This document shows, piece by piece, positions 20,448 through 54,128 of a stretch of DNA of 64,000 bases. The stretch is taken from the NCBI GenBank assembly GCA_964035545.1, contig OZ037770.1, positions 4,124,662-4,188,661 of the forward strand, written 5' to 3'. A program made the translations under genes and the position numbers. The stretch is from Bugula neritina. Its lineage: Eukaryota; Animalia; Bryozoa. A model generated the notes under the pieces. It did no database searches and had not been told where the DNA came from. It was given only the letters and a program-made list of their open reading frames with translations. Positions within the stretch are counted from its first letter, which is position 1. Each line of letters begins with the position of its first letter.

Positions 20448-21509
20448 ATGCCAGTAAATTCTGAGCTAATTCATCAGATTGAATCAGAATTACTGGGGAC
20501 CACGTTTCACGTGAGTGACGACGAGGACACTGTAATGGCCGACGGTCTGTTAGACCTGGAGCTAGACACTGTTCTTAGTCAGTCCACACATGATTCACTG
20601 GTCTCTCGAGTGCATTCTAAAAGTTGTGACTCTCAGACTAGTAACAGTCGACAGTCACTAGAATTATGTTGTGAAGATCCACTGCGATCTGACAATAATT
20701 CTACTTTTGTAGACACACTCGCGCCCGTCTCTCCGGGCATGCCTTCCCTAGAGATGGCGTGGGACCCAGAGCCGGCCCCACCAACTTCCACAACCAGACA
20801 ACTGCCACCCCAGCTAAAAGCAACCTCTAACTGGACTACCCCTGCCACAGAGACAGAAATTAAGAAATATAGAGGGGATGACAATACCCGCGAATGCCAG
20901 CTATGTCAACAGCGGTTCACAACTCATCGTAGATTAAGAGTCCACTTGCCGCAGCATTTTATCACAACGTTCTGCCCCTGCGGGGAATATAGTGATCACC
21001 GAGACTATCTACTGCGTCATCAACGCACCATGCGTTGCTTTCAGGGACATGTATACGACGTGGATAAATCATCTTACTCAGCATTTCTCGAAGCTATCAG
21101 ACCTCTCATCACCGACCCAGCTCGGCTATCTTGCCTGGAGCAAGGCTTTCCCTCCCCGAGACCCATCATCTCGGAACCCGTAGATAAACCTACGAAGTCA
21201 TCTAATTCCCCACCTCTCAGCCCCATACGTCAACCACATACACTCCCCCGTGTCGTACTACAGAGGATAGACACGAGGACGTACACACTTCCTCCCCACT
21301 CCCATCCGCAGAACGAAAAAGACACCGGCAGCAGCAGACTTTCTCCCACTCATCCCCTCTGGCCCGCAACCTATGAGAAGTAGAGACTAGGGCAAACGAA
21401 CTGGAACAAGAGGTCTACAGACTGGCCCCCCACATTCATGCCGCATCCAGTGAGCTCCGGTCGCTACAGGAGTCTATCAAACGTATGAAACGAGCAGCCC
21501 AGGTTTAAC
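20448..21509 (+). CDS. Gypsy accessory ORF3 with two C2H2-like zinc fingers and a C-terminal coiled coil (frameshifted near 21300-21380)
   Basis: CQLCQQRFTTHRRLRVHLPQH and FCPCGEYSDHRDYLLRHQR; lies between integrase and the 3' LTR. Confidence 0.7.
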
Positions 21510-24702: not shown

Positions 24703-28280
<3,578 letters not shown>

Positions 28281-29116: not shown

Positions 29117-31223
29117 TTAGGGGTTTTCTTCTCTACTAAGCCCATCGAAGCCAGGAAACAGGTAAAGTCTTTTACGGAGAGGAAGAGTCTTCCAGATTAC
29201 TACCAAATTTCTGCTTCTCTCTGAATCTTCATCTGTATACAGTTTCTTAACTAGTTTAGTCTGTACCTGTAAAGTAAGTGATGACTAGTAAGATTGTTTA
29301 TCAATTCACTATTATAGCTGTGATAAAATGTAAATTTCAGCTTTTAGAATATTGTATCCCACTTGTAACAAATATGAACAGCAAACACTTTGGGAATTGT
29401 CTACCGCAGTCATATCATATAGCATATAGCAGTACAGTGGCACTAGTATATTAGCAAACTACAAGAACATATAGACAAGGAAGAGAAACTATAATCAATA
29501 TAGTGAGCCAATATATGCTAAAGGAATTGTAGGAGCAAAAACTACCAGGTAAACTAGAAAAAACTAGGAAGGATGTTCTGTTACTAAAACTATAGTGGAT
29601 ATTTTCTTTTAGAAGACAATAGGGTTTAAACATAGAAATGAATAAAATGATATGATGAGAAATAATATTTTAATTTCTTAAATAAAAGTTGAGCTAGCCA
29701 AAAAAGTATTGTGATTTTTAAACTTTAAAAGTATAAATAGTTTGTGAATTATAAACCCACCTGCTGAAAGATGGTGTAGAGATCCCGGTGACAGGCATGT
29801 TTGTAGATTGAAGATACTAGAGCTCTAATCATAGGAGATCCATACTCAGGATGTCTCTTTGATGCTAAAATACAATTAAGTGCAACCAAAATCTATAGGC
29901 TTATAGCCAGACCAAGTTTAACAGGTTTTAGTTATGGCATAGGCTTATCATATTTAAAATCTCAAAGTTCTGGAACACATTCTACTCTTTTCAGTTTAGT
30001 AGTTATTAGAATCAAAGCCCTTACAAAATGCGGGAATAATACAAAATCGGTAAACCACATTTTATGCAAGGTACAACAGCTCAGACAAGCTTATAGCCAA
30101 TCACTGTCTCTTATTATACTTACAGCAGACGTTACTCTTCAGAACAAGAAGATTATCAACATCCAGTCTGGTCATATGTTCTTCTATTCTATATTCTGGT
30201 GGTAAGACAGGTCTGATGGGTCTTATCACACTGGGTGTTTCAGGATATACAATATCATCCTCAGATTCAGAATGTGTAGAAGAGACAGCTTCAGTTTCTT
30301 CTTCTTGAGCTGCTGCAAGACCTGATCTCTCTGGATTCTCTTCAATGTTTGCTGCAACACATATAATTTAGTTATCAGGGAAGTAAGATAGATCAAAACA
30401 TCCATTTTCGTAGCAAAGTTGCCTAACCAATTTTATATGACACATTTCTGAAGATGTCCTTTTTTTTCTGTAAAAAATCATCTTAATGAAACAAAGAAGT
30501 TTTGACTACTGTGTAACCACTCAAATAAGTGTGTCCGTTTTTATTACAAAACAATATTCACCTTCGCTGCAAGCTTCCAGGATGACAACTGTAGGTTTAG
30601 GCTTTAAACTCAAAGGAGCGAGCAAATCATAAAAGTCTGTAAGGTTGACCTTCTCAAGGTCAGTTCCATAGATGCAGTTATCTTCACCACCATGAGTCAT
30701 AATAACCAGTATTTGACAACCCAAGCCATTGTTTTTTTCTCCTCTTATCTCAGACTTCACAGCCGACATCATTTCCTACAAATTTGGAAACAACTATAAT
30801 AATATTATATAATTGATACAAGTTTATGATAACTGAATAAAAGAATAATTTTTGAACTAGCAAAAAACAAAGTTTTGACCAGCAATAAACATGATTTGGG
30901 TTTTTTATTTAGGCCTTATTTTGAAGCATTGATAAACTAAGTAGTTAGGTGATGGTGTCAATTTTTAAGGTTTAATCAAGCAAGTGTCATGTTTCATATA
31001 CATGTAGATAAACTGAATGAATACTATTGCTTTCAGTCTAACAATATTATACCTCTGCTGTTAAGTCTGTGTGTGTCTCAACATCAAACTTAAGAGAGTT
31101 CAACATGACAGACATGTTCTCAACATCAGCATCTGAACCTTCCCTGCATAAGTCTGGTCTTTCGACAAAGTTCTTGTTGTTTATTATCAGAGCTCTTCCT
31201 CTCTCTCTGGTCATACTGAACAC
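29117..31223 (-). CDS. Caspase (peptidase C14A) domain exons: p20, acidic linker, p10
   Basis: VFSMTRERGRALIINNKNF..REGSDADV; LVIMTHG..IYGTD (catalytic His); KPTVVILEACSE (catalytic Cys); SKRHPEYGSPMIRALV; TLPLRKRLYLFPG. Confidence 0.92.
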
Positions 31224-34200: not shown

Positions 34201-37200
34201 ACTAGTATTTCTTTTATTCCTATGGAATGCGTGTTTTTCCTAAATGTATTAGTTAGCGTAGCACCAGTCCATTAACAGCTAGGTGTCATGATAGTAATGA
34301 CTGAATTAGTTATTGTTCCTAGCTAGGCATTATTATAGTAAAGCTGGATTAGCAACTATTCATAGCTACGCATAGGACTGCTCATATAACTAAAGATGAC
34401 TGGAAATTTCACTCGAAATTCGCTTAATTCGAGCAAATTCCTGCTGACCTTTTGTTATTACCCTGCGAATCCCCTGCGATTCAAGCAAACTCCCTCAAAT
34501 TCGCATAGAACTTTCTAGACTAGTTACATCCAAATATATTAAAGGATTGCTCTATCTTGTCTAATAAATGGCCATTTAGGTCAAACACACATAATATTGT
34601 GTTTTTCTAAGCATGCATTGACAAAAAGCATTTGACCAAAGGTAGAAAAAGTTAGTTGAAGTTGAGGGTGTAGATTGGTAACAGTCAAAACGCTGATTTT
34701 GAAATGAGCTGGGAAATGTGACGTAACAGCGCCAGCATTCCTGCTGGTCTCGTGACTATACAAATGAATAACAATAGAAATATGACTGTGAGATGTGATC
34801 TTTCAGCTCGTAATTTGTATATTTATAGAAGTGCAAATGTGAATTATCTCAATCTATAGTTTTTTGACATGTTAAATAACATGTATGTGATAACATTAGG
34901 CTGTATTTTGCTTGTAAACATAGAAAAAAGCATTGCAAAAACATGCATTCTTTAGGATGAATGCCTGCGATCGATCTAAACTAGGTCAGATTGTGCAATA
35001 TTACGGGCGCACCAAAGCTGATCTATATAGCGCACTGTAACTGCTTGAACGTTATTGGTTGATGTTGCGCTCAGCAACCTTGAATAGTAGCGTTATAGTT
35101 AGCACGTGCAGCATAGTTACTGGCGTTCACACGTCACGTATTAGGCTATTCTTTCTCATGGCTGAAAATTTTACCTCCCTCAAAATTGGAATTTTGAAAA
35201 GCTGTCTTCTAGGCATATTGTAGTGAATTTTGCCAGTTCACTATTATTATTTGTGGGTCTACTTAATCAAAGCCACTGCGACAGGTTGTTTACGATAAGA
35301 TATTTTATTAGTTATACAAATAATAAGAAGGTTATTTACTGCTAGCATGAATAGAAAAACGGTTACATAATTAACGAGCTTTAATACACAACTGTTCTAA
35401 ATGAAATCCCAAGCTGCTCTGCCGGCTAGCTACTCAGCGCACTGCAACTACGAGTAGCTAGCTCCACCTGCTATCAATTAATGTCATTGTCCTGATTGGT
35501 GGCTACTAGTGGTGCCACTACTGCCCATAGCTACACTCCGACAGTGTCGAACTCACAAGATGCATAAAACAATATAGAGTTAACCTTTTCGATTAATACC
35601 ATAATACTTGCGCCACTAAAATCTACCACAATATATCCCTTTGCAAAGTCACAATTGTTTGCATACACATTAGATTATAGTTCATAATTACAATGTGATT
35701 GTAATAAACTAAGATAGAGCAATCCTTTAAAGGGAGCCTTCAAACCAGTGAATTGAGTTGACTGCCAGCATATCAGATGAAGACACAACTCGGAGCTACC
35801 AAGCAAGGACACTTGTATACCTAATGCATGGTTATTTACCTTATACTTAGAATAATAGTAGTACATATAGTTTTCCACGTGATGTAAGGAGTTATCCTCT
35901 CTAACTCTTTTTCTATTTTTGGATATATATTGGAGTACAATAAAGGATAGTGAGTATAAACTTTCTTATTTGTTTATTAATAAATATTCTCAGCAAAGAA
36001 TCACTGTGTTCCATCAGCTAATAACCCACACCAATAATTACATGCAGCGATTAATAACATTCCACGCATAAAATTATTACAATACTCTATACTGGGCGGA
36101 GAAAGGAGAGCTGCTATAACTTATGTTCATCAGCTGAAAAACTCACCTTGTCAGTGTTTGAGAAGAGTTGTTTTATCTTTGGGTTGGTTGTTGGCTTTAG
36201 TTCAATTTTTATTAACTTCATGCCTTCTTCAGGTTGCAGATTGTCATCATCTTCAAAGAGATTACTCAGATCTTCATCATTTAACTCATCTACGATCACA
36301 TGATTAGACAGATTATTGCCAAAATTTGAAACCATAAACTGCACATTTTGCTTAGACAGGAGTAGAAGCAATTAATTTCAAAAATCACAATTAGATATGA
36401 TTTGTAGGGAAGTGTAGAGCAAAATTTGCAAAGCCTTTAATTTTACCAATACTGTGGGTTTAAAAAGTAAGTTCTGTCTAAAAAGTTTACCGTTTGATTT
36501 GTTCTGCTCTCTTCGAAGTTTGAGCTCAGAAAGGAACTTCTTCAATTGATTTGTTTCTGCTTCAGACAAAGTCTCACCTGAGCAAAACAGATGTAATTAG
36601 TAACATTAAAACTGGATGAGAGGCATTAGAAGAATATGAGACATAATCAAAGGCTCATGTATCAAGTTTACACTTTATAAGTCAGTCTAAAAGTTCGTTA
36701 AAGTAGCTGTGTAGTTTGCTAATGTCCATCTAGCTGCTATTAAAATTCATCAATGCCTGAAAAAACAGTAGATACGTTTTGATAGTGCAACAAACTATTT
36801 AAAAACATTTGGGCAAAGCAATCAAAGGTGAATCATAGTTGTAAACATACATGGATGAATTAGAGCACTGGGTATCTCTTCATTGTTACACAATATCTTT
36901 GAAGATCCATGACACTTCTTGACATTTAGTGGCAGTTGGCTTTTCAAAGATCGGAGACACCATTTAGGATGCAAAAGCTTTTTAGGGCAAGAAACCCCCA
37001 GTAGCATGCAGTGAGCACAGATGCAGGCAGTAACTGGTCGACTAGCAGTCCAAGTTTCCATGACATGTTTGAGAATGTTGTTTGTAGCTGAGATGAGTTT
37101 CTCCCACATCTTGGAAATGTGAGGAGCATCGGATGACACATAGAGTAAGACTCTTCTAGATTCATAGTCATGTGTCAGCTGTGTGTATGTCTCATCTTGA

Positions 37201-40200
37201 TAGACATTAGCTCCATTTCTCTTCACTTTCATTGTAGCAAACTTTTTAGAAAACAGTTCTAGCAAACCAACTGTCATTTGATAGTAGACATGCTGCGGTA
37301 AAGCCAGGCCCTTAAACTTTATCTCAGTGTGAAGGACCATATCCTTTGGTGAGGTGTAAGACACACCGTGATGTTCCTTAGCAAACTGAGGGACGATGAA
37401 GTACGGTTCATGGACATCATTTTCGAGAGGGCCATATAACAAACGGAATGTTCTAAGCAAGCAAACAGCAGTTTCAACATCATGACAGCTTTTAAATAAT
37501 GTTTCCTTTGCGATCAAATATGTTAGAAGAGATTTCATCATCAAACCTGTTGTTTTGAAGCAATTCACAGACTCTTCAAACTCTTCTGTTTCAATTCTCA
37601 ACCCTTCTTCGGAAACGCATGATTGAAAGTGATCAACTCTTTTCTGCCAGATCTCTGGGTTATGATGATACAAGACACAGAGTAGTTTGGTAACTTCTGT
37701 GATCTTGTGAAATATGTATAGTTTAAGTGCTTCAATATTCTTATACCAGAGAACTTTACCGCAGTCATGCATGTATGTGAGAATAGTATCTAGCTGATGT
37801 GGCTCTACCTCAAAGCCTTCTTTTGTCAATTCCACCAGAATAAATGAAAAAGAGCTGAATGCTCCGGTTAAAGACAAAACTTTCTCATTCACTTCTTCCC
37901 AGATCAGTGGCAAAAGCTTAACAAAGGGCTGACTGCTTGAAAGAAGAGAGCTCTTTATTATTTCAAACTCAGCATACTTGTCATCCTTTCCAATCTGATA
38001 AATATCTGCACTGGCAAAAACCTTTCCATTTGATGAGTTGAAATGCTGTATTTTCGCAAAATTTCCATCTGAACCTTTCTCTTCATCAAGAACCTCTTTG
38101 CACAGCTGTTCAGATACTCTAAGAAAGTTTTCTTTAAGCTGTTGGAAGTGTTGACTCTGGAACTTATCCTTGTGTGTAAAGACAAGCTTAGGTGGGCCAA
38201 GAGATGGATGGGCAAGATAGAGGTGAGACATAAAGTCAAAGGCCAACTTTCTGACAGCCTCTGTGTTTGTAAACTCATTTGAAATCTGATCATACTGCTC
38301 CATGTTGACTACAATTACCGGTACACAATTCTGTCTCAGTGTTAAATGGTATGTGATATGGTAAACTTCTTGGCCTCCCATATCTATGAGACGAAGAGTT
38401 GTACCATCCACCTCCACCTCTTCTACATTGAACACTTTTGTGGTCTCATCATACTCTGCATTAGGACTTCTGTCAGTCAGAACTCTCTTCTTATCAGTGC
38501 TCTGTAATGTTCTGATTAGACTAGTTTTACCTGCCATGGTGTTTCCCAAAACCACTATTGTAGCAAATGGCAGATTTCTACCAGCACCCTTAGCCAAATC
38601 TGTGTAGTATTGTCGCACAGCATCTAATCCTCTTTGACAGACTTCTAGTGGAGGAGATGTAAGAGCATCACATCTACGTGTATAGAGAGACTGAAGACGC
38701 GTTAGCTGTAGTATCTCAGGGTTCAAAGATGTCATGGATTTGTTGTAGGATATATCCAGTGTGTACAGATTACTCAATGTACACACTGAAGATGGTAGAC
38801 TGGTGAAGTTATTCATTGATATGCGTAGTTTCTGTAACTTTTGTAGATTCTGTATTCTAATAATATATTATATTCATATTATCAGCACATACTAAAGGTA
38901 TAAGTGAGATCTAATTATAGCTGTCATAAATCTACAATGATAGTAAAGGATTATACACCGAATTTGGACGTATGAAGTGGCAATGGCTACAGTGACCTTA
39001 TTATATAAAAGCCTTTAAAGTAGTATGGGATATAATTGTAATTCTAGAATTTTCATTTATTGACATTCTCACAATTATCAAGTGGTATTTTGATATTCCA
39101 AATCATTTACAACACTACAACTACAATGAATTGGTAAAAGATATTAAAGAAGTATTTTACTGTCACAATTCATAATTCTTCCATCATAAACAATATTGTT
39201 CTATAATATAACATGTAGTTGAGTATAACTGCTTACACTGATATTTTATTAGATATGTATAATATATCTTATATATATGTACTCTATATAATACAGTTAA
39301 TCTGCTACCGGGAACCATGTAACCGGTACTACCTGTTCCATGGGTCGGACTGTCGGCGACTAAACCGATACCCCCTAATGTCTTGACATTAGGGAGGGTG
39401 TACTGGACATCCATGTAGAACTAAAAATAACATCTACTAAAAATCTGAAAGACCATTCCAGTGGGTATCTGTGGCAGCCCTCAAGGGCGTGTACAGACAA
39501 ACGTGTATAACGGCCAGCCACTGCAGCAGGTTGTAAATGCTAGCATATCTTGACCTGTTCTTGCCGCTAGATCCCATTTACACCCTGCCGAGAGAGAGAA
39601 CATGGTAACGCGAAAGCCAAGTTCACTTAACCACTTCGCATGCAGTTTTATGGACTATGACAATGGAAACAGTATTTGATACCGGCACGAACGTCGCCCG
39701 GGTTAACAAGGTTCGCGCTGGTCTGCTCCCGCTCCGGCAGCCAGTGAAAAGTCAGCTAGGACGCAATGGAAAGTTCAGAAAAGTTCTGAGACTAGCAGAA
39801 TGGAATGTTAGAACATTACTAGACCGGAATAATTCAAAAAGACCAGAGAGGCAGACAGCACTTGTTGCAAAAGAGCTGGGCCGATATGATATCGATATTG
39901 CAGCTTTGTGTGAAACTCGGCTTGCCCTGAATGATAGCCTTGTTGATAATGGGTACACATTCTTTTGGAGTGGAAAAGGCGAGGAAGAAAGAAGAGAATC
40001 AGGGGTGGGGTTTGCTATCAGGAATACAATTATGCCTTATCTAGAACAAGAACCAACAGCAATAAGTGATAGAATTATAAGCATGAGACTTCCACTGAAA
40101 AAGAATCATTATGTGACAATAGTGAGTGCTTACGCTCCAACAATAACAAATACGGAAGAAAAGAAAGAGGAGTTTTACAATAAATTGAGAGAAACAGTAA

Positions 40201-43200
40201 AGAATATATCCATCACAGACAAACTGATTATAGCCGGTGACTTTAATGCAAGAGTAGGGTGTGAAGCTCAAAATTGGCCAGGCGTTATTGGTAATCAAGG
40301 AATTGGAAAATGTAACACAAATGGAGAGCTGCTACTGGCATTCTGTTCTGAATACCAGCTTGTTATCACGAACACAGTATTTAAGCACAGGCAGCATCAT
40401 AAAGTCACCTGGATGCACCCACGTTCTCAGCATTGGCACCTCCTCGATTATGTGATTACAAGACGGAAAGACCAGAATGATGTGCTAGATACTAGGGCAA
40501 TGAGAGGTGCTGATTGCTCAACTGACCATACCATGATCAGGTCCAAGCTAGCATTTGCATTAAGGAAAGCAAAGAACAAGACAAGAGGGAACTCCGCATG
40601 CAAACTCAATGTGGGGAAACTACAAAATCAGGATATGCTACAGGAGTTTCAGAAACAGATGGATAAGGCAATGGACTATAGGGATGATGATGGTGTAACG
40701 TTAGAAGAGAGATGGGGAAGGTTAAAGATCTCAGCCTTCAACACAGCTACCAAAGTCTTAGGTAGAGCAGAAAGAAAGCATCAAGATTGGTTTGATGACA
40801 ATGATGCAAAGCTGAATGCATTACTTAATGAACGAAATATGGCTAAATCAAAAGCACTACAGAGAAGAACAAGAAGTAGCACTGACCGATTAGCGCAAGC
40901 ACGCAGCAAGTTGCAAAAATACACTCGAGAGAAAAAGTCTCAATGGTGGGAGGAAAAAGCAGAATCACTCCAACAGGCAGCTGATAAAAACAACATGAAG
41001 GCATTTTACAATGGCCTTAGAGAAGTCTATGGGCCACAGAACAGGGGAATCACCCAATTGCTGGACCAAAGTGGTAAAACAGTACTTACAGCAAAGAATG
41101 ATACCTTAAAAAGGTTCGCCCAACATTTTGACCTGTTGCTGAATGTACCAGGGGAAGTGGATCAGGAAGCTCTCAATAGTCTCACAAATATGCCACCCAA
41201 TTTAAGCCTAGATGATATGCCAAGTTTTGATGAGCTTCTGGATGCTATAGATGCAACCAAGGAGAATAAATCTCCTGGAGAATGTGGCATTCCAGCTGAG
41301 GTGTGGAAGTACGGTGGAATCAGGCTTAAAGAGAGACTATATGATCTGATTGCTTATATATGGAGTAATGAGAAGATGCCACAGAACTGGAAAAATGCGA
41401 ACATTGTGCCCATTTTTAAAAAGGGTAGTAGGAAGGACTGTGGTAATTATAGAGGAATCTCGCTTTTGTCTATAGCTGGAAAGATTATGGCCCGTATCAT
41501 CCTCAACAAAATCAATGTAAATATAACTCCAGGAATACTTCCAGAAACACAGTGTGGCTTTCGAAACAGCAGGAGCACCATTGATATGATATTTAGCTTT
41601 CGACAAATTCAAGAAAAATGTGCTGAACAAAACATGGAGCTGTATGCTGTATTTATAGACTTTACAAAAGCCTTTGATACAGTATCAAGAGATGGCCTCT
41701 GGAGGGTACTGAAGAAGTTTGGCTTAACTGAGAAGGTCACCAACCTGATAAAAGCTCTTCATGCAGGCATGCAAGCCAAGGTAGTGCAAGGTAGAGATGC
41801 TTCAAATGAGTTTGTAGTAACCAATGGTGTCAAGCAGGGGTGTGTTCTTGCGCCAACACTATTTTCATTATACTTGACCGCTATGCTTGAGGTGGCATTT
41901 CAAAATGTAAATGAAGGGATTTATATTCAAACTCGACATGGGGCTGACCTCTTTAATGTGGCTCAGTTCAAGTCTAAGACCCGTACTACCAAACACCTAG
42001 TCAGAGAGATGTTGTTTGCTGATGACAGTGCTTTGGTGGCACATTGCGCTGCAGATATGCAGGTGCTAATGAACAACTTTGCAAAAGCAGCGGCTCAGTT
42101 TAGCTTGAAAATCAACATAAAAAAGACAGAATGCATGTACCAACCAATCAAACTCATCCACCCTCCACCTGAACCTGAAGTTGTCATGATAGATCAAGAA
42201 CCAGTTGTACTTGCCTCAGACTTTACTTATCTAGGAAGCACTGTTTCCTGTATGGCAAAAATAGATAAAGAGCTACGGAACAGATTAGGCAAAGCAAGTG
42301 CGGCTTACGGTAAGCTGCAGCAGAGACTCTGGAACAACAGACACGTATCCATCAGGGTAAAGTGTAAAGTCTACAGAGCGGTGGTGCTCTCAAGCCTGCT
42401 GTATGGAGCAGAAACATGGACAATATACAGGACACAGGTGAAGAAGCTAAGCGCTTTCATGATGAGGCAACTGAGAGACATAATGGCTGTAAAATGGTAT
42501 GACAAAGTTACGAATGAAGAAATATTAAGACGTGCCAATTTGCCAAGCTTGGCCGACATCCTTATAGAAAAGAACTTGAGATGGCTAGGCCATGTGCACA
42601 GGATGGAACATAGCCGGCTACCAAGACAATTGCTCTACTCTCAGCTGAAAGAGGGTAAAAGAAATACAGGGCGACCTAGACTCAGACTTAAAGATGTTGC
42701 TAAGAGGAATATGAAATGGAGAGCAATAAACTTGAGTTCATGGCAGCAGACAGCTGACAACAGAGCTGCGTGGAGAGCTGCAACCAAATCTAAGCTTAAT
42801 CCATAAAACAGTCATAGTCGTATCGACTGACTGCAAGAGAGAGAGATATAATACAGTTATAATCAAACTAGATAGAGACAAAGTTAATATGTATGAGTCT
42901 GCATGAAGTTTTACAGAAAGTATGTCAGGGAAGAACATAATACTATTCTCTATATTCTACCTAACAATGGTAAGAAATACACTTTTTGAACAGAAAGTTC
43001 AAGTTTTGATCAACTTTGCTATATGATGAAATACAAGTTTAGGGTACCATTGCACTATCTTGCAGGGATATTACGTGTGCATTCTTTGAAAGACAGTTTT
43101 GTAATTTATAAAGGAAAGCGAATTATTGAACGTAATATAGATATGAAAAACTTGTTATGTATATACTATTTCGAGCTTTACAGAGGAGAGATATGAACAC

Positions 43201-46200
43201 CATAATGTAGTTTAACTGTATTGACTATTTAGTTGAAAAATGTTTAAAATGGTAAGTCTATTGTGACACACAAACCTCTCAGGTAGAGTAGATATTTCAC
43301 AGTTCCCCATATCCAACTCTTTAAGTGATGTGAGTGATGACACAACTTCTGGTACTGTGTTGAGAGGATTGTCTACTATGTCTAGTTTCTCTAACTGAGT
43401 CAGCTGACACAGACTGTAATATAACGTTTTTAATATATGTTATAGTCAGTAGTCCACTTGTAGTTTGGTATAGTTTGACATATATACAGAGTATAATTAC
43501 AGATCGTTGCTATAACTTATACCACATGGTTGTGAGGGACAAGATAACTACTATATCAATTCAATTATTTAATTTGACTACTTGACCACTTACAGGTGCA
43601 AATATAATATTTTTTTATAATAGAGTACAAGTATTCAATACTCAGTAAATACTAGTAAACTAGAAATGACTGCTTACTATATAAATTAGATTTTTGTAAA
43701 ATAAGAATATAATATTATAATATAATTGCATATTTTAAAATTATGGGATTTCCATGATATTACAAACCATTACATGCATATAACTTTAAAAAAATAATTT
43801 TATATTTTAATTTATATAATGACTTACCATAATGCTACTTCGTAATACTACTTTATGTAAGCATATAAAGTTGTGAAATATTGATTGTTTCATACAACAC
43901 AAAGTTGTGACACACAAACCTCTCAGGTAGAGTAGATAATTCACAGCTCCACATATTTAACTCTTTAAGTGATGTGAGTGATGACACAACTTTTGGTACT
44001 GTCTTGAGAGAATTCTCTGTTATGTTTAGTTTCTCTAACTGAGTCAGCTGACATAGACTATAAACATATACAGTGTTTGATATATTCAGTTTTACTTATA
44101 CAGAGTGCAATTACTAGAGTTACTTCAGCTACCACATGATTATGAGGGATAAAAAACTATACTATCAAGTTATTTCTTCATAGCAAATCTATATAATGTA
44201 ACATACTATCATAAAGCTGGACTACTAGGTAAAAATATAGCAATTTATCATAATAGTACACAAGTATTTATTTTTAAACTCACTGAATACTATATAATAG
44301 ACTAGAAATTATTGCTAAGCCTAGGGCCACACTGTGCGTATTTTCGCATGCGAACATTTAAACCAGGAGTAGCAAAGGTGTCCACTGTATGCGTTGAGAA
44401 AACATTTGCACTTGTCGCTCAGCATTCTGAACGCAAGTGCGAATCCTCTCTGTCGCCGTCACCTAATTGGCTGGTAGTTATTAGCAAGCTCAATTCTTTA
44501 ATTTTAGTGCTATGTTCCAGTAAATTGCGTTTTGTTAAAAGCAAGTGCAATTTAAAAATGAAAGCTTCATTTATCCCGCATTACTGACACTACAGTGGAC
44601 ACCTTTGCTACCTGTGGTTTCAAATTTCGCATGCGAAAAAACGCACAGTGTGGCCCTAGGCTTAGATGTTTCACGCATGGACGCTTCCCATCTAGACGAT
44701 ATTTATAGATTTTAGTGTAATATATGTATTTTATGCTATTATTTAGCACATAATAGAAAGCAAATAAGCCACCAGCAAGCCACTTAGCCTAGGGCCACAC
44801 TGTGCGTATTTTCGCATGGGCAAATTGAAACCACAGGTAGCAAAGGTGTTCACTGTAAGTAGATGTAATGGGGGAGGTTCCTGCTCACTTTTCCTCACCG
44901 TCGAGTCTACGACTCGTAGGTGTTAAAAAGTTGAGCTAGAACGCCCCCCAATACATCTACTCCAACTTATTTTTATTAAATGATAATTATAAAAAAAATA
45001 TAATTTGTGTTTATACTTATAAACACAAATTGTATTTATATTATATAAAAATTTGTTTTAACTTGGTCATTATTTTTCATAGAAAATAAAGTTTTGAACG
45101 TTATAACTCTAAAATACGGGTTGCGAAGGAGATTCGGTAGATTTTATTATATCACCATCGCTTGTTGATATCAATAATTTATTACCAACCGGTGCTTGTA
45201 ATTTAGGAATAGCGTAACCCGGTATATTATTTAGCGTAATAAGATCGACAATATCTATGCCAGTTTTTACAATATTACCATTGCTCGAAAGCATTAATAA
45301 TTTAGCTCCGATTGACGGTTGTATTTTAGGCATAGCGAAATTAGACACATTAGTTTTCGTAATAACGCCGCTAACGCTTAAATTACTATCTTCAATGCTA
45401 CCGATATTAGTTGATACGGTTAACTTATTATTAGGATTATTTATAAGGGGTATAGGTTGTTTATCTATATTAGTTTTTGTAACGACTTTGCTAATACTTA
45501 TACTACTATCGACAACGCTACCGATATTAGTTGACGTGGTTAATTTATTTGTTGGATTTTGTATGAAAGGCATAGCGTAATTAGATACATTAGTTTTTGT
45601 AATGAAATCGTCAACTTTTAAATCGCTATCTATAACGTAACCAGCGTTAGTTGATATAGTTAACTGATTAATGGGGTTTTGTATGAGAGGCATAGCGTAA
45701 TTAGACGATTTCATAAAAACGTCTTCAACGCTTAAGCTACTATCAGCGACATTACCTTCTTCATTCCATATACGACTAATGTTTTATTAGGGTTTTGTAT
45801 TTTTGGTATACTTGCGTCATCAACGTATTGTTTTGTAGCGACGTCTTGATAGTCAACAGGATCAACGACTCTAGATATTTTATTAACGCCTATATCTAAA
45901 GTACCCGTAAGCGTATCACTACCGTCTCTTAAAACGAAATCGATATTTATTCTATTAATTACGTCGTTTGACGTTCCTCCAAATATATACACAGGACTCC
46001 ATTTATAATATAATTTTAATGACACTAAATCGAATGGTATAAATATAAGCGCGTCATTATCAATTGTTACATCATCGGATTTACGACTTGTAAAATTATT
46101 CGAACACTCTAATATTAGCCCGATATTTTACCCGCGTTGATTATTTCTAATATAGGATTTTAATATACCGAAGATTATGTACGCCGCCTCAAATTAAATA

Positions 46201-49200
46201 TTCTTTAGTAATGTGCTCGAAAGGTTTTGTCGTATCTCCAATTATTAGCGTTAATTTTTTATCTTTCCAATACAAAGGATTATTACTAGGACGCTTGTGA
46301 AATTGTATTAACGTGTAAGTTAATTCTATTCGTTTATCTACTATAAAACCCAACAATAACGCCGTGCTAATTTCATTACTAAAAGTTTGTATAAAATTAT
46401 TTTGATTTTCATTTATACTTCTTTCGTATAATTTTCTTCTTTTATATTTTCGGAAGAACCTCGAAATATATACACAAAACTCATTTATATATACTTATAA
46501 TAAAGTTTAAATGCTACTTATTGAAAAGGTATTGCCTCACTAGTATTTTCAGTTAATGGAAAATCTGTAAGAATTATGTTATCGGGTTTATGACTGGGAT
46601 AAGTTTTTGAAAGCGCTATTGTTGTTGAAAAGTTTTTATTAGCTTCAATAGTTTTATTATTCGGAATTTTAATATACGGAACACTATGCTCATTAACACT
46701 AATATCGTAAAAAGTATCTTCATTAGATGGCCCGGATAATGCGGTGCTATCCTGAATATGTATAATACCGAATTGTTTAAGAGAATCCATTTATTATAAG
46801 AAAAAAGTTAGTAAGCTATAGCTTGACCGCTTCCTTCTAAAATATTACTAATATTATTTCGAGGTTGACTAAGCATTTTTAATACGGCTCAATTTTTAGC
46901 GTTTAAATTTTATTTTTGACCTAGCTTTTTTAATGCGGCTCGATTTCTTATTGCGTTATCAATTTTTTCACCGGCCGCGTTACCGGCTTTAGCTATAACT
47001 TTTTCCCAATTGCCGTGGCCGCTTTTCTTACGCTGGCATTTCCAGCTATTTAACTTACTACGTTTCTAATAGAATCGAATATTCCACCACCGGCGTAGTG
47101 TCTTTGTAATCGTTGTCTTTTATCGTAAACATACATTTATTATAGGCAAAAAAGAATGTTTTTGTACTCGTTACGAGTAATTTGTTTCATTCTAAGTAAT
47201 TCGTCTAATATAGCTACAATTTCGTTTTGCACTCCCGTATTCCCTGCTTTAACGCTAGAAAATAAAAGTTGAAGTCGTTCCACTAAAGCGTCGGGGTTAA
47301 ACGATAAATAAACTACTCCGTCACCGATTTGCCTTTTAGCATTTTTACTATCGGCGAGTCTCGCTCTTTGAGGATATAATTGTTCCCAAATAGGTCTACC
47401 GATATGTCTCCGTGTTTACTTTGATATATAGCACCGCCGTTATCGAGTATATTAGCGTAATTCGCTAAATCATTTTCGCTATAATCTATCGGCGTTTTAC
47501 GCGTTAAAAGACTTAAAAGTCCTCTAATCGCTTGATATTCTTCACCGTCAAAAATTATTTTACCGTCATTAAAATTTATAGGTTTAGTACCTATAACGTG
47601 TCTATTACCATCCTCTTTCACGTTATAAGCACCGGATTCTAAGCCCGCTAAAGCAGTTTGAGTAAATTCGTCTAAATTTATAACTCCATCCGTTATAGCC
47701 GGTTGAACATTATAATTGGGTAATGTAAGCAATTGTTTTAACGCTTCAGTCGTTTGAGCTTGCGGAGTCGTTACGGGTTGAAAATATTTTTCTTGAGCCA
47801 TAGCGGCGTTCAATTCCTGCGCGCGCTCTCATTTAAATTCTTCTTTTATTCTATTCTTTCAAGATATAAAATCTTGTACGATCTCATCTCTTTTCGGCGG
47901 ATCATTAATCTTTAATAAACTCATTTATATAGACACAGATTTGTGTCCACTGTTGTGTCTAGTGTCTACGTTTGTTTCCACTATACACGTTCTAAAACAT
48001 TCAAATTTACCCATGAGTTTTGCGACTCGGAATAACCCAGCCATTTTACTAAAGCTTTTTTACCTTTCTTTTTAATTACGCGCTCTATTCTATAAATTTT
48101 TTGACTCGTCTTTTGCAATTCCTGTTCGTAAAAAAATCCTTGAATTTCTTCTCCTCCCGAGTCAATTAATTCATAAGTCGTCGGATTCGTGTATAATATT
48201 TTATTTATCGTAAACACTTCCTCAGCCCATCGTTCCTATTATCGCCGAGGCAATACGACTGTGTCGTTGTTTAGCGAGCGTAGAATCCGATATAGCTTTT
48301 AGTTCGTTGAGCATAATTTTATCGCATATTTCGTTTCTAGTCTTAGTATCTTTATTATTAGCGTGACATATCGTGTCTCATAGCTATAGCGTCGTCTCGA
48401 TCTACCGGTTTACTCCATTCTTTAGGAGTCATGTCTTCATTAAGACGCTTATTTAATTTAGTACCGGGACCTAAAAAACTATGACCGGGATAATGTAATT
48501 CAACAGGTAAATTATTTATTAAATTATTCGCTAAACTCGACCCAACAAACAAAGTTTGTTTACCTCCGCATTGACCGCAAGTACCGTAACTGATTAGTCT
48601 ATTGTTTTTACTTACTTTTTCTCCGTAATTAAGAGTTTTAGTTTTAATTTTACATTTACAACAGTACATTTATTATAGTAAATTGAAATACAAAATCTTT
48701 CGTGGTAAAACAAAATTAATCGTAATAATAATCGTTACTCCCTATAAGTAGAAGGGGTGTTATCATTGGAATGTCGGGGTGCGGTAAAACTACTTTACTC
48801 TGCAATTTACTGTTACAACCTAATTGGCTTGATTATAATAAACTCATGATTTACGGTAAAAGTCTCGATCAACCGGTATATAATATTATGCGAAAAGCTA
48901 TCTAAAGAAAATTTTTTAGAAGTATTTAAAAATAGCGATGTAATAATTAATTCCGGTATAAACGTAAATCGTATTTTAAAAAATTACGCTACCGGTAACG
49001 GTAATATAAACGCTGAATTTGTTGAATCGAGTGATAAAGTTTATGACCCTAGTGATTTAGATGCTAATAATAAAAATCTAATAGCGTTTGACGATTTAAT
49101 GCTTGAAAAACAAAACGTGTGCAAAAAATATTACGTAAGAGGACGACATAATAACGTCGATTGTTTTTATTCATCGCAAAATTATTTTAAGCTACCCAGA

Positions 49201-52200
49201 GAGTCTATTCAAGAAAATGCAAATTTTATTTGTTTTTTTTCTCAAGACGGTAAAAACCTAAGCGATTTACATCGAGATCACGTAAGTGGTGATATGCCTT
49301 TACACGAATTTAAAAACTTTTGTTATAATGGATGGCAAAAACCTCACGGCTTTATTACTTTGGACCTATCTTCTTCGAAAAACAATGGAAAGTATAGGCA
49401 CGGGTTAGACGAGTTTTATATATGCGACTAGACACTAGTGTCCACTTTTGTGTCTAGTGTCCACTTTTGTGTCTACATTAGTGTCCACTTTTAGGTCTAG
49501 TGTTTACTTTGTATTCACTTTGTGTCTAGTGTCTGCATTTGTGTTCACATTATATATACACTAGTGTTTACTTTTATATTTAAACGTTTATTTTTTAATA
49601 AAAATAAGTTAGAGTAGATGAAATGGGGAGCGTTCCAGCTCACTTTTTTAACACCGGGGAGTCGTAGACTCGACTGTGGGGAAAGGTGAGCTGGAACAAC
49701 CCCCCCCCCCATTACATCTACTACTGTAGCGTCAGTGGTGTGGCATAAATAAAACTTTCATTTTCAAATCGCACTCGCTTTTAATAAAACCCAATTTACT
49801 GAAATATAGCACTAAAATGAAGGAATTGGGTTCGCTAATTAACTACCAGCCAATTAGGTGACGACAACAGAGACGATTCGCACTTGCGTTCAAAATGCTG
49901 AGCGACAAGTGCAAATGTTTTCTCAACGCGTACAGTGGGCACCTTTGCTACTTGTGGTTTTAATGTTCGCATGCGAAAATACGCGCAGTGTGGCCCTAGG
50001 CTTACTATTAATTACATTTTTATAGCACAACAATATATAATGGCTTAAAATTTTGTTATTCCCACAATATAATAAACAATTGCATATATATGTGTAACTT
50101 TAAAACACTGCATTTTCTATTTTTCATTTATACAATGGCATACCATAACAACACTTGGTAAGCATAAAAGTTGTCAAATATTGAATCTTTAAAAGAACAC
50201 AAAGTTGCGACACACAAACCTCTCAGGTAGATTAGATAATTTACAATCCACCATATTCAACTTTTCAAGTGATGTGAGTGATGACACAACTTCTGGTACT
50301 GTCTTGAGAGAATTCTCTGTTATGTTTAGTTTCTCTAACTGAGTCAGCTGGCATAGACTATAAACATACAGCGTTTAATATATTTAGCTTCACTTATACA
50401 GAGTACAATTACTACAGTTACTATAACTACCACATGATTATGAGGGATAAAAAACTATACTATCAATTTATTCCTTCATAACAGATCTATATAATTCAAC
50501 ATACTATCATAACGCTTGGCTATATTAGGTAAAAATATAACAGTTTATTGTAATAGTATGCAAAAAAATTAATTTTAAACTCACTGAATACTAATAAACT
50601 AGAAATTATTGCTTACTATTAATTACATTTTTATAGCACAACAATATATCATGGCATATAACTTTAAAACTGTGTTATTCCCACAATATTATAAGCCATT
50701 GCATATATGTGTGTAACTTCAAAACATTGCATTTCATATTTTTCAATTATACAATAAAATACCATAACAATACTTGGTAAGCATATAAAGATGTCAAATA
50801 TTGAATGTTTAAAACAATACAAACGTTCTGCCACACGAACCTCTCAGGTAGAGTAGATAACCTACAGCTCCCCATATCCAACTCTTTAAGTGATGTGAGT
50901 GATGACACAACTTCTGGTACTGTGTTGAGAGGATTATATCCTATGTCTAGTTTCTCTAACTGAGTCAGCTGACACAGACTGTAATATAAAGTGTGTAATA
51001 TATGTAGTCTGCATTACTATAATATTTTATACTATACTCACATTTTGTTTTCAACCAGGTAAAACTATATACAACTCAACTACCAAGCAATTTATTGTAG
51101 CATTGTACATGCAAAGCATGGGAAGTTAACAGTTTATTATAATAGTATACAGGTATTCAATTATTATATATACTCAGTGTGTGAATACTAACCAACTATA
51201 CAACTGCTTACTATTATTTACATTTTTATAACACAAGAATATATAATGGCATAAATACCTTAAATTATGTTGTTTTCACAATATTACAGACCATATTTCA
51301 TATGGAATTAAAAAAAATTGCATTTCACATATTTTTCAATTATATAATGACATGCCCTAATTATACTTGGTAATAAGAAACTATTTTATGATTTCAAGTA
51401 ATAAATGTTTCAAACAATACAAAACCTGTGACAAACAAACCTCCCAGGTAGAGTAGAAAATTTACAGCTCTTCATATCCAACTGTTTAAGTGATGTGAGT
51501 GATGACACAACTTCTGGTACTGTGTTGAAAGGATTATCTTCTATGTGTAGTTTCTCTAACTGAGTCAGCTGACATAAACTGTAATATAAAGTGTATGATA
51601 TATATGTAGTCTGCATTACCATAACATTTTATACTATATTCACATTTTGTTTTCAACCAGGTAAAACTATATACAACTCAACTACCAAGCAACTTATTGT
51701 AACATTGTACATGCAGAGCATGAGAAGTTAACAGTTTATTATAATAGTATACAAGTATTCAATTATTATATATACTCAGTTTGTGAATACTAATCAACTA
51801 TACAACTGCTTACTATTATTTACATTTTATAGCACAAGAATATATAATGGCATACCTTAAATTTTGTTATTTTCACAATATTACAGACCATATTTCATAA
51901 AGAATTAAAAAAATTGCATTTCACAGATTTTTCAATTATATAATGACATAACCTAATTATACTTGATAAGGAACTATTTTATGATTTCGAGTATTAAATG
52001 TTTCAAACAATACAAAACTGTGACAAACAAACCTTTCAGGTAGAGTAGATAATTCACAGCCTTCCATATTCAACTCTTCAAGTGATGTGAGTGATGACAC
52101 AACTTCTAGTGCTGTGTTGAGACGATTCCATCTTATGTCTAGTTTCTCTAACTGAGTCAGCTGACATAAACTGTAATATAAAGTGTGTAATATATGTAGT

Positions 52201-53116
52201 CTACTGTATCATATATATAATAATATAATCTGTACTCAGCTATAATGTAAATTATGGAGCAAACAATTTTGTTGAAACAGGGTACAGCAAAAAAAAGCTA
52301 TTATATGCCATGTTATACGTGTAATGGGTGCCCTGTGTAGAATTGAGTGATTAGATGTACATGTATAAAGACATCCTGTAAGTTTAATAGATAAGGGTTA
52401 CCCTACAATGTAATGCTAATATATAGTATGATTTATAATTATAAATGGTTTACTTTGTTATAGCTAATCTGACACAAATTAGCATGTATTTAACATTCCG
52501 AAAATTTTTTATTTTCAAATATATGGCTACATATATTATACTTATATATATATATATATATATTGCAGATAAAAACCTTCTGTATAATCCTACACGTATA
52601 CATGTACTACATATAGTATGTTACTTCTGTATTCAACTACATAAAACATGTTTTAATTTGTGATGGCATGTGTAACACTACAAACAGTTTCCCGCTGTCT
52701 AATTTCTACAACTTGTTCAGCTGGTAGAGATACAATGTTATACATATTACTATAGCTTTTTATAGTGCATGATTACATCATGAGTATAAGAATGTACTTC
52801 AGCATTGACTTAGATACATGCACCGTGGGTTCTATTTATCACAACTAAACTCATTTAACATTTACACAGCTATCTTAATAGACACTCACTGGTCTAGACT
52901 TGCTCTGTCAGTCAGGATAGAAACATTTAGACACAGGGCTTTACCGGCAACCTCTCCAATGTTGTTTGGAATTCTCCCTCCTAGTTTTAGATCTGTGATG
53001 TAAAAACTTCCAACTTCACGTTTCACATCAGCAGTAGTATATGACTTGGTTTTAGTTTTCCATACATCTGACCAGCTCACAGGAGGCTGTCCAGAATGTC
53101 TGAACCAGATTCTCAT
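29117..53116 (-). CDS. LRR-ROC-COR (Roco) protein with a C-terminal caspase domain, 15 coding exons, about 1385 aa
   Basis: Exons 53116-52890, 52170-52033, 51578-51441, 50978-50841, 50357-50220, 44057-43920, 43413-43276, 38856-36851, 36577-36491, 36289-36147, 31223-31053, 30775-30562, 30351-30124, 29864-29761, 29266-29117. All introns are GT-AG, phases match, total 4158 nt with no internal stop. The start codon is tentative. Confidence 0.85.
31385..33137. mobile_element. Non-autonomous hAT element in an intron
   Basis: TIR CAGGGATGTAGTGG / CCACTACATCCCTG; exact 8-bp TSD ACTATAAC (31377-31384 and 33138-33145); no long ORF. Confidence 0.92.
36851..38856 (-). CDS. Large exon: last LRRs, ROC GTPase and COR domain
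   Basis: LTSPPLEVCQRGLDAVRQY (LRR-ROC link), P-loop GNTMAGKTSL, switch I ETT, DMGGQ (G3), FTHKD (G4), and COR-like YMHDCGKVLWY and YFIVP. Confidence 0.92.
39300..42845 (+). mobile_element. Full-length RTE-clade LINE, antisense within an intron
   Basis: 14-bp TSD ATATAATACAGTTA (39286-39299 and 42846-42859), (AG)n 3' tail, single long ORF. Confidence 0.95.
39657..42806 (+). CDS. RTE ORF: APE endonuclease plus reverse transcriptase (1049 aa, intact)
   Basis: WNVRTL, ALCETR, GDFNA, LDYV, STDH (APE); QCGFR, DFTKAFD, GVKQGCVLAP, LFADD, YLGS; RWLGHVHRM..GRPRLR (RTE C-terminus). Confidence 0.97.
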   Translation: MTMETVFDTGTNVARVNKVRAGLLPLRQPVKSQLGRNGKFRKVLRLAEWNVRTLLDRNNSKRPERQTALVAKELGRYDIDIAALCETRLALNDSLVDNGYTFFWSGKGEEERRESGVGFAIRNTIMPYLEQEPTAISDRIISMRLPLKKNHYVTIVSAYAPTITNTEEKKEEFYNKLRETVKNISITDKLIIAGDFNARVGCEAQNWPGVIGNQGIGKCNTNGELLLAFCSEYQLVITNTVFKHRQHHKVTWMHPRSQHWHLLDYVITRRKDQNDVLDTRAMRGADCSTDHTMIRSKLAFALRKAKNKTRGNSACKLNVGKLQNQDMLQEFQKQMDKAMDYRDDDGVTLEERWGRLKISAFNTATKVLGRAERKHQDWFDDNDAKLNALLNERNMAKSKALQRRTRSSTDRLAQARSKLQKYTREKKSQWWEEKAESLQQAADKNNMKAFYNGLREVYGPQNRGITQLLDQSGKTVLTAKNDTLKRFAQHFDLLLNVPGEVDQEALNSLTNMPPNLSLDDMPSFDELLDAIDATKENKSPGECGIPAEVWKYGGIRLKERLYDLIAYIWSNEKMPQNWKNANIVPIFKKGSRKDCGNYRGISLLSIAGKIMARIILNKINVNITPGILPETQCGFRNSRSTIDMIFSFRQIQEKCAEQNMELYAVFIDFTKAFDTVSRDGLWRVLKKFGLTEKVTNLIKALHAGMQAKVVQGRDASNEFVVTNGVKQGCVLAPTLFSLYLTAMLEVAFQNVNEGIYIQTRHGADLFNVAQFKSKTRTTKHLVREMLFADDSALVAHCAADMQVLMNNFAKAAAQFSLKINIKKTECMYQPIKLIHPPPEPEVVMIDQEPVVLASDFTYLGSTVSCMAKIDKELRNRLGKASAAYGKLQQRLWNNRHVSIRVKCKVYRAVVLSSLLYGAETWTIYRTQVKKLSAFMMRQLRDIMAVKWYDKVTNEEILRRANLPSLADILIEKNLRWLGHVHRMEHSRLPRQLLYSQLKEGKRNTGRPRLRLKDVAKRNMKWRAINLSSWQQTADNRAAWRAATKSKLNP
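43276..43413 (-). CDS. LRR cassette exon 6 (138 nt, phase 2-2)
   Basis: LCQLTQLEKLDIVDNPLNTVPEVVSSLTSLKELDMGNCEISTLPE. Confidence 0.9.
43920..44057 (-). CDS. LRR cassette exon 5 (138 nt, phase 2-2)
   Basis: LCQLTQLEKLNITENSLKTVPKVVSSLTSLKELNMWSCELSTLPE. Confidence 0.9.
44319..44661. mobile_element. PIF/Harbinger-like MITE, copy A
   Basis: TIRs GCCTAGGGCCACACTG..CAGTGTGGCCCTAGGC, flanked by TAA/TTA. Confidence 0.8.
45109..46002 (-). pseudogene. Polinton fibre/spike-like repeat protein (frameshifted)
   Basis: GTLDIGVNKISRVVDPVDYQDVATKQYVD motif, followed by ~41-aa repeats (NYAMP.IQNP.NKLT.STN.G.V.DS). Confidence 0.6.
47145..47924 (-). pseudogene. Conserved Polinton hypothetical protein (disrupted)
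   Basis: GLLSLLTRKTP..YSENDLANYANIL, then in another frame PDALVERLQLLFSSVKAGNTGVQNEIVAILDEL; I recognise both as recurring Polinton motifs. Confidence 0.55.
47981..48235 (-). pseudogene. C-terminal fragment of Polinton retroviral-type integrase with chromodomain
   Basis: RWAEEVFTI..TYELID..GEEIQGFFYEQELQK..YRIERVIKK..LVKWLGYSESQNSWV; the catalytic core is deleted. Confidence 0.85.
48236..48669 (-). pseudogene. Parvovirus-VP1-like phospholipase A2 (PLA2X) with an N-terminal CxxC..CxxC module; frameshifted
   Basis: MYCCKCK..CGQCG; HYPGHSFLGPGTKL (Ca-binding loop); PVDRDDAIAMRHD (catalytic HD); continues after the frameshift as ..TRNEICDKIML. Confidence 0.8.
48690..49431 (+). pseudogene. Polinton A32/FtsK-like DNA-packaging ATPase (disrupted)
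   Basis: Walker A IIGMSGCGKTTLL at about 48760, Walker B IAFDDL, RGRHNNV..SQNYFKLP, KPHGFITLD; stop near 48904. Confidence 0.88.
50220..50357 (-). CDS. LRR cassette exon 4 (138 nt, phase 2-2)
   Basis: LCQLTQLEKLNITENSLKTVPEVVSSLTSLEKLNMVDCKLSNLPE. Confidence 0.9.
50841..50978 (-). CDS. LRR cassette exon 3 (138 nt, phase 2-2)
   Basis: LCQLTQLEKLDIGYNPLNTVPEVVSSLTSLKELDMGSCRLSTLPE. Confidence 0.9.
51441..51578 (-). CDS. LRR cassette exon 2 (138 nt, phase 2-2)
   Basis: LCQLTQLEKLHIEDNPFNTVPEVVSSLTSLKQLDMKSCKFSTLPG. Confidence 0.9.
52033..52170 (-). CDS. LRR cassette exon 1 (138 nt, phase 2-2)
   Basis: LCQLTQLEKLDIRWNRLNTALEVVSSLTSLEELNMEGCELSTLPE. Confidence 0.9.
52890..53116 (-). CDS. Probable first coding exon (N-terminal cap) of the LRR-Roco-caspase gene
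   Basis: Open frame MRIWFRHSG...DRASLD ends at a strong phase-2 donor (CA|GTGAGT) that matches the LRR exons. Confidence 0.6.
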
Positions 53117-54128
53117 ACTCTCTGTAACATCATACAATGACAGTTTAATTATTACACAGTGCTAGCAGGTGATGTCTGTCATTCTGAAACCTGTCACATA
53201 CATCTATTATTTGCCGTGTGTCAAACACTATTATAGCTACATATAGACATGTCTGGCTACTTTAGGTTTATAAAGGTAAAATCTGCAAATTTAAAATGAT
53301 CTCTAATTTTCTAAGAACAACTGCTTTGTGTAAATACTTTAAAATTATGCTGCTTCGGTTTCAATAAAGATCTTTTTAAATAATGTTGACATATATTAAA
53401 CATTATATAAATATATTAAAACATTTTAAAATGATTTGAATTTAAAGCAGCCAAAAAAACGCTGAATTATTATTTCATATCTATGCATGCACAAAAAGGT
53501 ACGAATAGCAACATTGATCCGATCAAGTTAAAACTTTCTATATCTGACACTGCGTACTTCCTACCCTATGAGTCACACAGCCAATGTTTACAGGATGATT
53601 ATAAAAATACATGCACTAGTATATAGCTAGAACACTTTTTGGATAGTTGAGTACTTGGATGTTGCTCATATATGAGCTATGGAAACACATTTACCACTAA
53701 AGAGGTTTTAGAAAACTCTTGTCCCAATAGCTAAAACCTTTACTAGTCTTGCTAAAATGAGATTCATACTAATGCAGAGCTGCTTTTGTTCAAACCTATA
53801 TTCAAATGAATGCTAAGTATTGTCTAAATACAAATAGTAACAACCAGTAGATAACTTTGGTTGAAAGCAAAACTTGTAACTTTGTTTTTCAGCACAAAGT
53901 TATCAAAATAACTCACCATCTGTTGCCATGGTTACTAAAGATTTTACTGCCGATTTATTTCAATTCTGTACATCTAAAGGTAGGCAGCCCTATCTCTACA
54001 AAATGTAAATGCAGATTCCTAAAAAAATTGCAGATTTGAAAATAATAGATTAGCTGCAATATTTTCAACTGCCACTATTAAGCACTTTATAGACAAAACT
54101 GTATAATAGTCAACAGTTAATTAACTAA

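Follow-up and report, generated by a model that had tools for sequence, protein, structure and literature searches.

A stretch of 64,000 nucleotides (nt) from the bryozoan Bugula neritina (contig OZ037770.1, positions 4,124,662 to 4,188,661; hereafter the window, with positions counted from its first letter) carries on its minus strand a gene whose product combines, in this order and on one chain, 14–15 leucine-rich repeats (LRRs), a Roc-COR GTPase switch and a complete caspase. This LRR-Roc-COR-caspase gene is a real, spliced single-chain gene, and the reading favored here, with somewhat better than even confidence, is that it is one of many fast-diversifying genes for intracellular sensor-switch-protease receptors, for which we infer ligand sensing, gating, proteolysis and an immune role. 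New in this family are caspase copies with a Cys>Ser exchange, recombination between the switch and caspase modules, and the small number of NLR and CARD genes detected in the same genome.

The gene model comprises 16 exons, one of them an inferred micro-exon, with introns that sum to 20.6 kb; the joined frame (local script) has 4,176 nt and 1,391 amino acids (aa), and its sole stop is the terminal one. The exons of a preliminary description, made by a model from the letters alone, all recur here, with AG/GT ends, agreeing phases and no internal stop. Its 14 junctions in phase are likewise borne out, but its first exon is incomplete at the start, and the micro-exon raises the number to 15. The N-terminal cap exon (52890–53121, about 77 aa), with an ATG at 53116, opens at a splice acceptor, and since the phases fit, a first coding micro-exon of 13 nt (53917–53929; Met-Ala-Thr-Asp plus 1 nt) is probable, with a Kozak-like ATG in AACCATGG, a GTGAGT donor and a phase 1 that fits the acceptor at 53121. 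The cap exon belongs to no Pfam family and has 61 related exons genome-wide; its ESM Atlas matches (TonB receptor fragments, 136–139 shared features) were judged to be chance.

The single-chain nature of the product depends on the joints that link the Roc-COR exon (36851–38856), through linker exon 1 (36491–36577) and linker exon 2 (36147–36289), to the caspase. The joint 36147>31223, which skips 4,923 nt with GT-AG borders, is present in two contigs of run X1 and one of run X3, from different studies; the joint 36851>36577 is found in contigs of runs X1 and X8, and 36491>36289 in contigs of run X8. The contigs were matched to the gene at 85% likeness, and the RNA nature of the three runs, in itself a guess, is likely since the contigs contain spliced joints. 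All three linking joints of the in-frame splice into the caspase that had been proposed beforehand are thus held by these contigs, and the check over 36147>31223 found the joint in this copy or a close paralogue; as 85% likeness admits close paralogues, the splice is established for the subfamily and not for this copy. The extra joints 36277>36849 and 31225>36225, also seen in these contigs, could arise where the symmetric 87-nt linker exon 1 is skipped, or come from paralogues of other linker length. It is very improbable that the fusion is an artefact, either of a Roco gene adjoining a separate caspase gene or of a misassembled region: the linker-caspase intron is indeed long (4.9 kb) and repeat-rich, and none of the reads examined spanned the LRRs to the caspase, but spliced contigs cross all three linking junctions, order and strand are the same in 83 of 83 loci, the exon phases are kept in 17 fetched paralogues, and independent single-chain models occur in two further lineages. 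On the spliced contigs, conserved phases and uniform loci, this explanation was rejected.

The paralogue search of the genome points to a large family. At least 83 Roc-COR loci were found, 67 with this exon as query and a further 16 when the query came from Watersipora, and a comparison by hand of the coordinates of Roc-COR and caspase matches placed a same-strand caspase exon downstream of every one, within 8 kb at 80 loci and at 10–15 kb at the other three. About 30 copies are clustered on one contig (C6, 2.5–6.3 Mb), and the closest named relatives of the family are all bryozoan. Of the 19 paralogues fetched, 17 have a caspase of the same five exons in identical phases, three of them with a GC donor, and two are broken in Roc-COR. 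Stops or frame breaks occur in L008 and L009. The linker-caspase intron measures 4,923 nt here versus 0.25–1.7 kb in most paralogues. Trees of the Roc-COR and caspase parts of the same 16 genes reject each other in the approximately unbiased (AU) test (p 1e-39 and 4e-6), indicating that the switch and caspase modules recombine. Two close Roc-COR paralogues that keep linker exon 1 (L011 and L019, at C6:2539429 and 2607458) are followed 10–15 kb on by a caspase of a more divergent type, with 42–48% identity, a possible effector exchange between subfamilies.

The sensor is built mainly from six cassette exons of 138 nt and phase 2-2, each with two 23-aa LRRs (52033–52170, 51441–51578, 50841–50978, 50220–50357, 43920–44057 and 43276–43413; the third matches Pfam LRR_4, E 2.6e-7). 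Sequence flanking these exons in the introns is common to them, so that the cassettes bear the mark of tandem duplication, and LRR-exon matches per paralogue run from 3 to at least 14, all as lower bounds. At ten concave-face positions, picked from the LxxLxLxxN/C pattern after the exon translations had been seen, the pairwise amino-acid difference is 0.60 versus 0.13 elsewhere (permutation P 5e-5; six exons), and 15 of 30 nucleotides are variable there versus 19 of 105 at the others (Fisher P 8e-4). The nonsynonymous rate (dN) is 0.38 at the concave sites versus 0.067 in the LRR framework, and the synonymous rate (dS) is 0.23 on the concave face, where synonymous sites are few, versus 0.09 for the framework. 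Because the sites were chosen post hoc and the exons are related, this concave-face excess is a strong hint and not a formal test of positive selection.

The switch is encoded by the single 2,006-nt Roc-COR exon, which contains the last LRRs, the Roc GTPase and COR-A/COR-B. The Roc motifs are all present in this copy (G1 GNTMAGKT with Lys468, the switch I Thr, G3 DMGG and G4 THKD), and the Pfam Roc match (E 7e-8) scores 33 bits versus a cut-off of 27; across 19 copies, GxxxxGKT, the switch I Thr, DxGG and THKD are nearly invariant, with one pattern miss, in switch I. Pfam matches to COR-A/B are weak and below the cut-off, but an AlphaFold (AF2) model of the exon is confident (predicted local distance difference test score 91, predicted template modelling score 0.89), and in Foldseek it matches LRRK1 (E 2e-23), the Chlorobium tepidum Roco (CtRoco; E 1e-19) and also LRRK2 over 577–735 columns; a COR directly after Roc is accepted on these structural matches. 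With dN/dS values of 0.23 (Roc-COR) and 0.42 (caspase), both parts are under purifying selection, as suggested earlier from the open frames. A cysteine cluster at the end of COR (CxCxHC; CxxHC with further Cys in the last 60 codons of 38856–36851) is conserved family-wide and is possibly a zinc site.

The effector is a complete five-exon caspase, as previously described, and it is recognized by Pfam (Peptidase_C14 in exons 1 and 2, weakly in exon 4), by alignment of all five exons to the family and by the catalytic dyad. Exon 1 (31053–31223; E 2e-10) carries the S1 Arg1130, exon 2 (30562–30775; E 3e-5) the catalytic His1188 (THG) and Cys1229 (EACSE; codon 30571–30569), exon 3 (30124–30351) a long acidic inter-subunit linker and the start of the small subunit, exon 4 (29761–29864; Peptidase_C14 positions 173–205, E 0.054) the S1 Arg1311 (SKRH) and a GS motif, and exon 5 (29117–29266) the terminal KRLYLFPG strand and the stop codon; Pfam was searched exon by exon. 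The model of a Watersipora homologue matches caspases-3/6/7/8/9 with a TM score of about 0.8 by target, in a p20/p10 fold. In the S1 pocket both Arg are present and Gln is replaced by Glu1227, at a position that belongs to the P1-Asp pocket in caspase structures; specificity or activity may therefore be altered. From the EACSE motif, a deletion in the substrate loop and the many Cys>Ser paralogues, activity is uncertain, and the chances that this copy is an active Asp-directed protease seem about even.

Among 18 caspases of this cluster, 11 have Cys (8 EAC, 3 QAC) and seven Ser, while all 18 retain His and the S1 Arg of the large subunit, and every copy examined has that of the small subunit; the pentapeptide ranges over QACSG, EACSG, EACSE and EASSE, with QACSG in two close paralogues, and Watersipora members have QACxG in 10 of 10 examined. 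The Ser codon is AGC in five copies and TCC in two, on different exon haplotypes; a single step leads from TGC to either codon, but two are needed between them. Parsimony favors two origins on these codon steps and separate haplotypes, although the exon tree does not by itself reject a single origin (p-AU 0.06). The open caspase frames of the Ser copies and their dN/dS of 0.41, close to the 0.39 of the Cys copies, suggest that they are maintained pseudo-caspases.

Between COR and the caspase lies a linker of 77 aa, one helix from linker exon 1 and, from linker exon 2, an acidic and likely disordered stretch followed by the N-terminal helix of the caspase; a helix and a disordered acidic stretch are also seen in the Watersipora homologue's model. 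An x-x-S-D motif is present in this linker in 16 of 17 paralogues and in Watersipora, with D-L/V-S-D as the family form and DLSN in this copy; it could be a release site and could equally be a kinase site. No CARD, DED or death fold is found by Pfam on the scanned exons or in the homologue's linker model, which agrees with their reported absence and leads to rejection of a hidden CARD or death fold in the linker or the N-terminal exon. The gene has neither the CARD or DED prodomain of a classical initiator caspase nor a NACHT or NB-ARC domain, its central NTPase being a Ras-like Roc GTPase. Searches of the genome for related families, exon-wise and hence giving lower bounds, returned one match to NACHT, none to NB-ARC, four to CARD and three to gasdermin. 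Set against more than 80 Roco-caspases, the few NACHT, NB-ARC and CARD matches suggest that the family occupies the niche of NLR-type receptors. A bolder proposal, held tentatively and at slightly less than even confidence, is that bryozoans have largely replaced NLR inflammasomes with more than 80 single-chain, GTPase-switched receptor-caspases that diversify by LRR shuffling and module recombination and are tuned by pseudo-caspase partners of independent origin.

Under the receptor reading, the LRR arc would at rest fold back on Roc-COR and the tethered caspases would be unable to pair productively; once a foreign or non-self ligand bound the concave face of the LRRs, the arc would open and the nucleotide and oligomeric state of Roc-COR would change, whereupon the caspases would dimerise by proximity, with no CARD/DED adaptor. 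The dimerised caspases would then cut their own acidic inter-subunit linker and, in most paralogues, also a D-x-S-D site before the caspase, triggering cell death, possibly via gasdermin, or a signal, while the Cys>Ser copies might be decoys, partners that only sense, or modulators in the manner of cFLIP; the active state could be GTP- or GDP-bound. Initiator caspases need dimerisation, which monomerisation alone would not give. This tells against a quite improbable variant, still immune and treated as a sub-case of the receptor reading with which it overlaps, in which a COR dimer separates the caspases at rest, and in which ligand together with GTP would break the dimer into monomers or free the caspase to pair with other caspases. 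The partly disordered COR-caspase linker would suit such a release, and so would the behavior of CtRoco, which is dimeric when nucleotide-free or GDP-bound and monomeric when GTP-bound (PMC5714945), and in which the closed state, with the LRR arc folded back on Roc-COR, opens its LRR in the GTP state (PMC11052575). The closed state clashes with a nanobody that binds the CtRoco LRRs on their concave side (PMC11052575), which offers a structural route from LRR ligand to switch. Since CtRoco, the best-studied Roco, monomerises with GTP, GTP-driven dimerisation of the caspases is not to be assumed, which qualifies the sensor-switch-effector scheme of the preliminary description; the scheme itself gains from the concave hypervariability and the large tandem family.

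Several observations weigh against the receptor reading. The concave-site excess comes from six related exons only, and the concave dN/dS above 1 (0.38/0.23) is based on few synonymous sites; the RNA junctions are attributable to this copy or to a paralogue 90–96% identical; GTP monomerises CtRoco, the reverse of simple induced proximity (PMC5714945); the catalytic pentapeptide EACSE has neither the Gln nor the Gly of QACxG, and two residues are deleted, relative to Watersipora, from the small-subunit substrate loop before Arg1311; and the NLR counts are exon-wise lower bounds. The caspase changes would be expected if the subfamily were mainly a non-proteolytic sensor, scaffold or decoy, with this copy weakly active or dead and the caspase fold retained because it dimerises or traps the caspase inhibitors of pathogens. 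Seven of 18 caspases changed to Ser by two codons in open frames under constraint, the varied motifs and the DLSN at the linker site point in that direction, but the Cys retained in the other 11, the invariant His and large-subunit Arg and the uniform QACxG of Watersipora make it unlikely. A little less likely still is that the machine is alike and its input is colony self/non-self recognition or a developmental cue such as zooid turnover or metamorphosis. Bryozoans are colonial and recycle zooids, and hypervariable LRR surfaces with cell-death outputs are marks of allorecognition systems too, as for fungal NLRs (PMC13449251); more than 80 tandem-clustered paralogues with birth-and-death, however, fit a pathogen-driven arsenal better than one or two polymorphic loci, and the design is expanded in the solitary amphioxus too.

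The sequence features of LRR-Roc-COR-effector conflict systems are all found in this family, namely variable LRRs, a GTPase with COR, a C-terminal effector and paralogues. In bacteria, Kaur et al. (2021) predicted counter-invader systems in which LRR-AP-GTPase-COR is joined to at least 24 effectors including a caspase (PMC8195603). These share with the bryozoan family the domain order, rapidly evolving LRRs and several paralogues per genome; they differ in being bacterial and computational only, whereas the bryozoan side has an animal-type p20/p10 caspase, symmetric LRR cassette exons, more than 80 copies, a single effector type and Cys>Ser copies. The ROCOs of brown algae, proposed as immune receptors, resemble the present genes in LRR-Roc-COR, phase-2 LRR cassettes, exon shuffling and diversifying selection, but have one LRR per 72-nt exon instead of two per 138 nt and are mostly effector-free and without caspase, three having a C-terminal peptidase (IPR009003, clan PA) (PMC11378527). 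Human MFHAS1, LRRK1/2, DAPK1 and CtRoco have the Roc-COR fold, the G motifs and the LRR-Roc-COR core in common with the family, but carry a kinase, a death domain or no effector and are single-copy conserved genes; a C-terminal caspase and at least 83 copies speak against orthology to MFHAS1, and the three groups of a Roco review include none with a protease (PMC6337361). NLR inflammasomes, Apaf-1/caspase-9 and caspase-8/cFLIP are functionally alike in combining a repeat sensor with a nucleotide switch and a caspase activated by proximity, and active and pseudo-caspases occur together in caspase-8/cFLIP-type systems as here; NLRs and Apaf-1, however, use a STAND ATPase and a separate, CARD/DED-linked caspase, whereas here a Ras-like GTPase and the caspase are fused and there is no death fold.

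Among animals, Watersipora subatra has single-chain models (XP_067947674.1, XP_067948342.1 and at least six more), the two named ones with 31–34% identity over Roc-COR, a similar linker anatomy and a complete caspase that keeps QACSG or QACGG. They are annotated as MFHAS1 or uncharacterised, one homologue having 21% identity to vertebrate MFHAS1, and no study of these 'MFHAS1 homolog' proteins was found in the literature search. Two of them, P0152 and P0156, start with MGxxxS, a possible myristoylation signal that would make them membrane-anchored variants. In Branchiostoma, at least 12 models join LRR, Roc, COR and Peptidase_C14 on a single chain (e.g., XP_002614028.1); those that were aligned keep QACRG and have a shorter linker than the bryozoan proteins. 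Zhang et al. (2008) proposed amphioxus 'LRRs-caspase' hybrids as a shortcut from recognition to apoptosis, with Roc/COR unmentioned (PMC2575513); their identity with the Branchiostoma Roc-COR-caspase models could not be confirmed. Bryozoan and amphioxus fusions lie apart in a quick tree, but a one-origin constraint is retained (p-AU 0.63), so that their common origin is neither shown nor rejected by these alignments. Amphioxus Rocos carry swapped effectors (caspase, OTU, GT4 or death domain) and those of Lingula have CARDs, so that exchange of effectors around a Roco core is a recurrent theme among marine invertebrates. Other caspase fusions were also observed, one joining an LRRC8-like pannexin membrane region and LRRs to a caspase (P0175, ENA, 916 aa) and one joining ankyrin repeats and a RING domain to a caspase (P0158, Logan, 1,028 aa). 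A literature search of non-subscription papers turned up neither a paper on the bryozoan genes nor an experimental study of a Roco-caspase. The preliminary description's view of an uncharacterised architecture therefore stands as regards function, but not as regards novelty, the design having been predicted in bacteria (PMC8195603), 'LRRs-caspase' hybrids having been noted in amphioxus (PMC2575513) and Watersipora and Branchiostoma models being public.

The family points to an unstudied class of animal intracellular receptors in which a caspase is reached without a STAND ATPase or a death-fold adaptor, in a phylum with a scarcely described immune system, and public databases conceal it under the name 'MFHAS1 homolog'. 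If the bolder proposal of a replacement of NLR inflammasomes is true, immune cell death in animals would have a third platform with a nucleotide switch, in addition to NACHT and NB-ARC, and this would be the first Roco to act through a protease. A standing question of the LRRK2/Roco field is in which nucleotide and oligomeric state Roc-COR is 'on', and a fused protease activated by dimerisation, reporting the state of Roc-COR, would give a direct readout for it.

The transposon load of more than 10 kb that had been noticed in the introns is confirmed by a nested insert, a long interspersed nuclear element (LINE) and the 4,923-nt repeat-rich intron. The nested insert occupies 5.7 kb (44307–50013) between LRR exons 4 and 5, and includes a fragmentary Polinton/Maverick-like insert (44858–49722) with 135-nt inverted ends (83%), AGTAG termini and pieces of chromo-domain and phospholipase-A2-like open reading frames (ORFs), itself nested in an element with inverted ends of about 290 nt. 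The LINE (39609–42803, plus strand) lies antisense in the intron before the Roc-COR exon and has a 1,064-aa endonuclease-reverse transcriptase ORF. Elsewhere in the window, exons at about 900–10000 (plus strand), which resemble a TMTC-type protein O-mannosyltransferase, are accompanied by a 76-nt tandem repeat (331–981) and a 900-nt inverted repeat pair (1619–2517 and 3596–4494). A Gypsy-type long terminal repeat (LTR) retrotransposon at 12100–22109 (plus strand) has 312-nt LTRs that are 94.5% identical, stops in pol and further insertions inside, and a second, degraded Gypsy-type copy lies at about 55400–57900 (minus strand). A DUF7869 ORF of 447 aa (25083–26963, minus strand) is probably the remnant of a DNA transposon.
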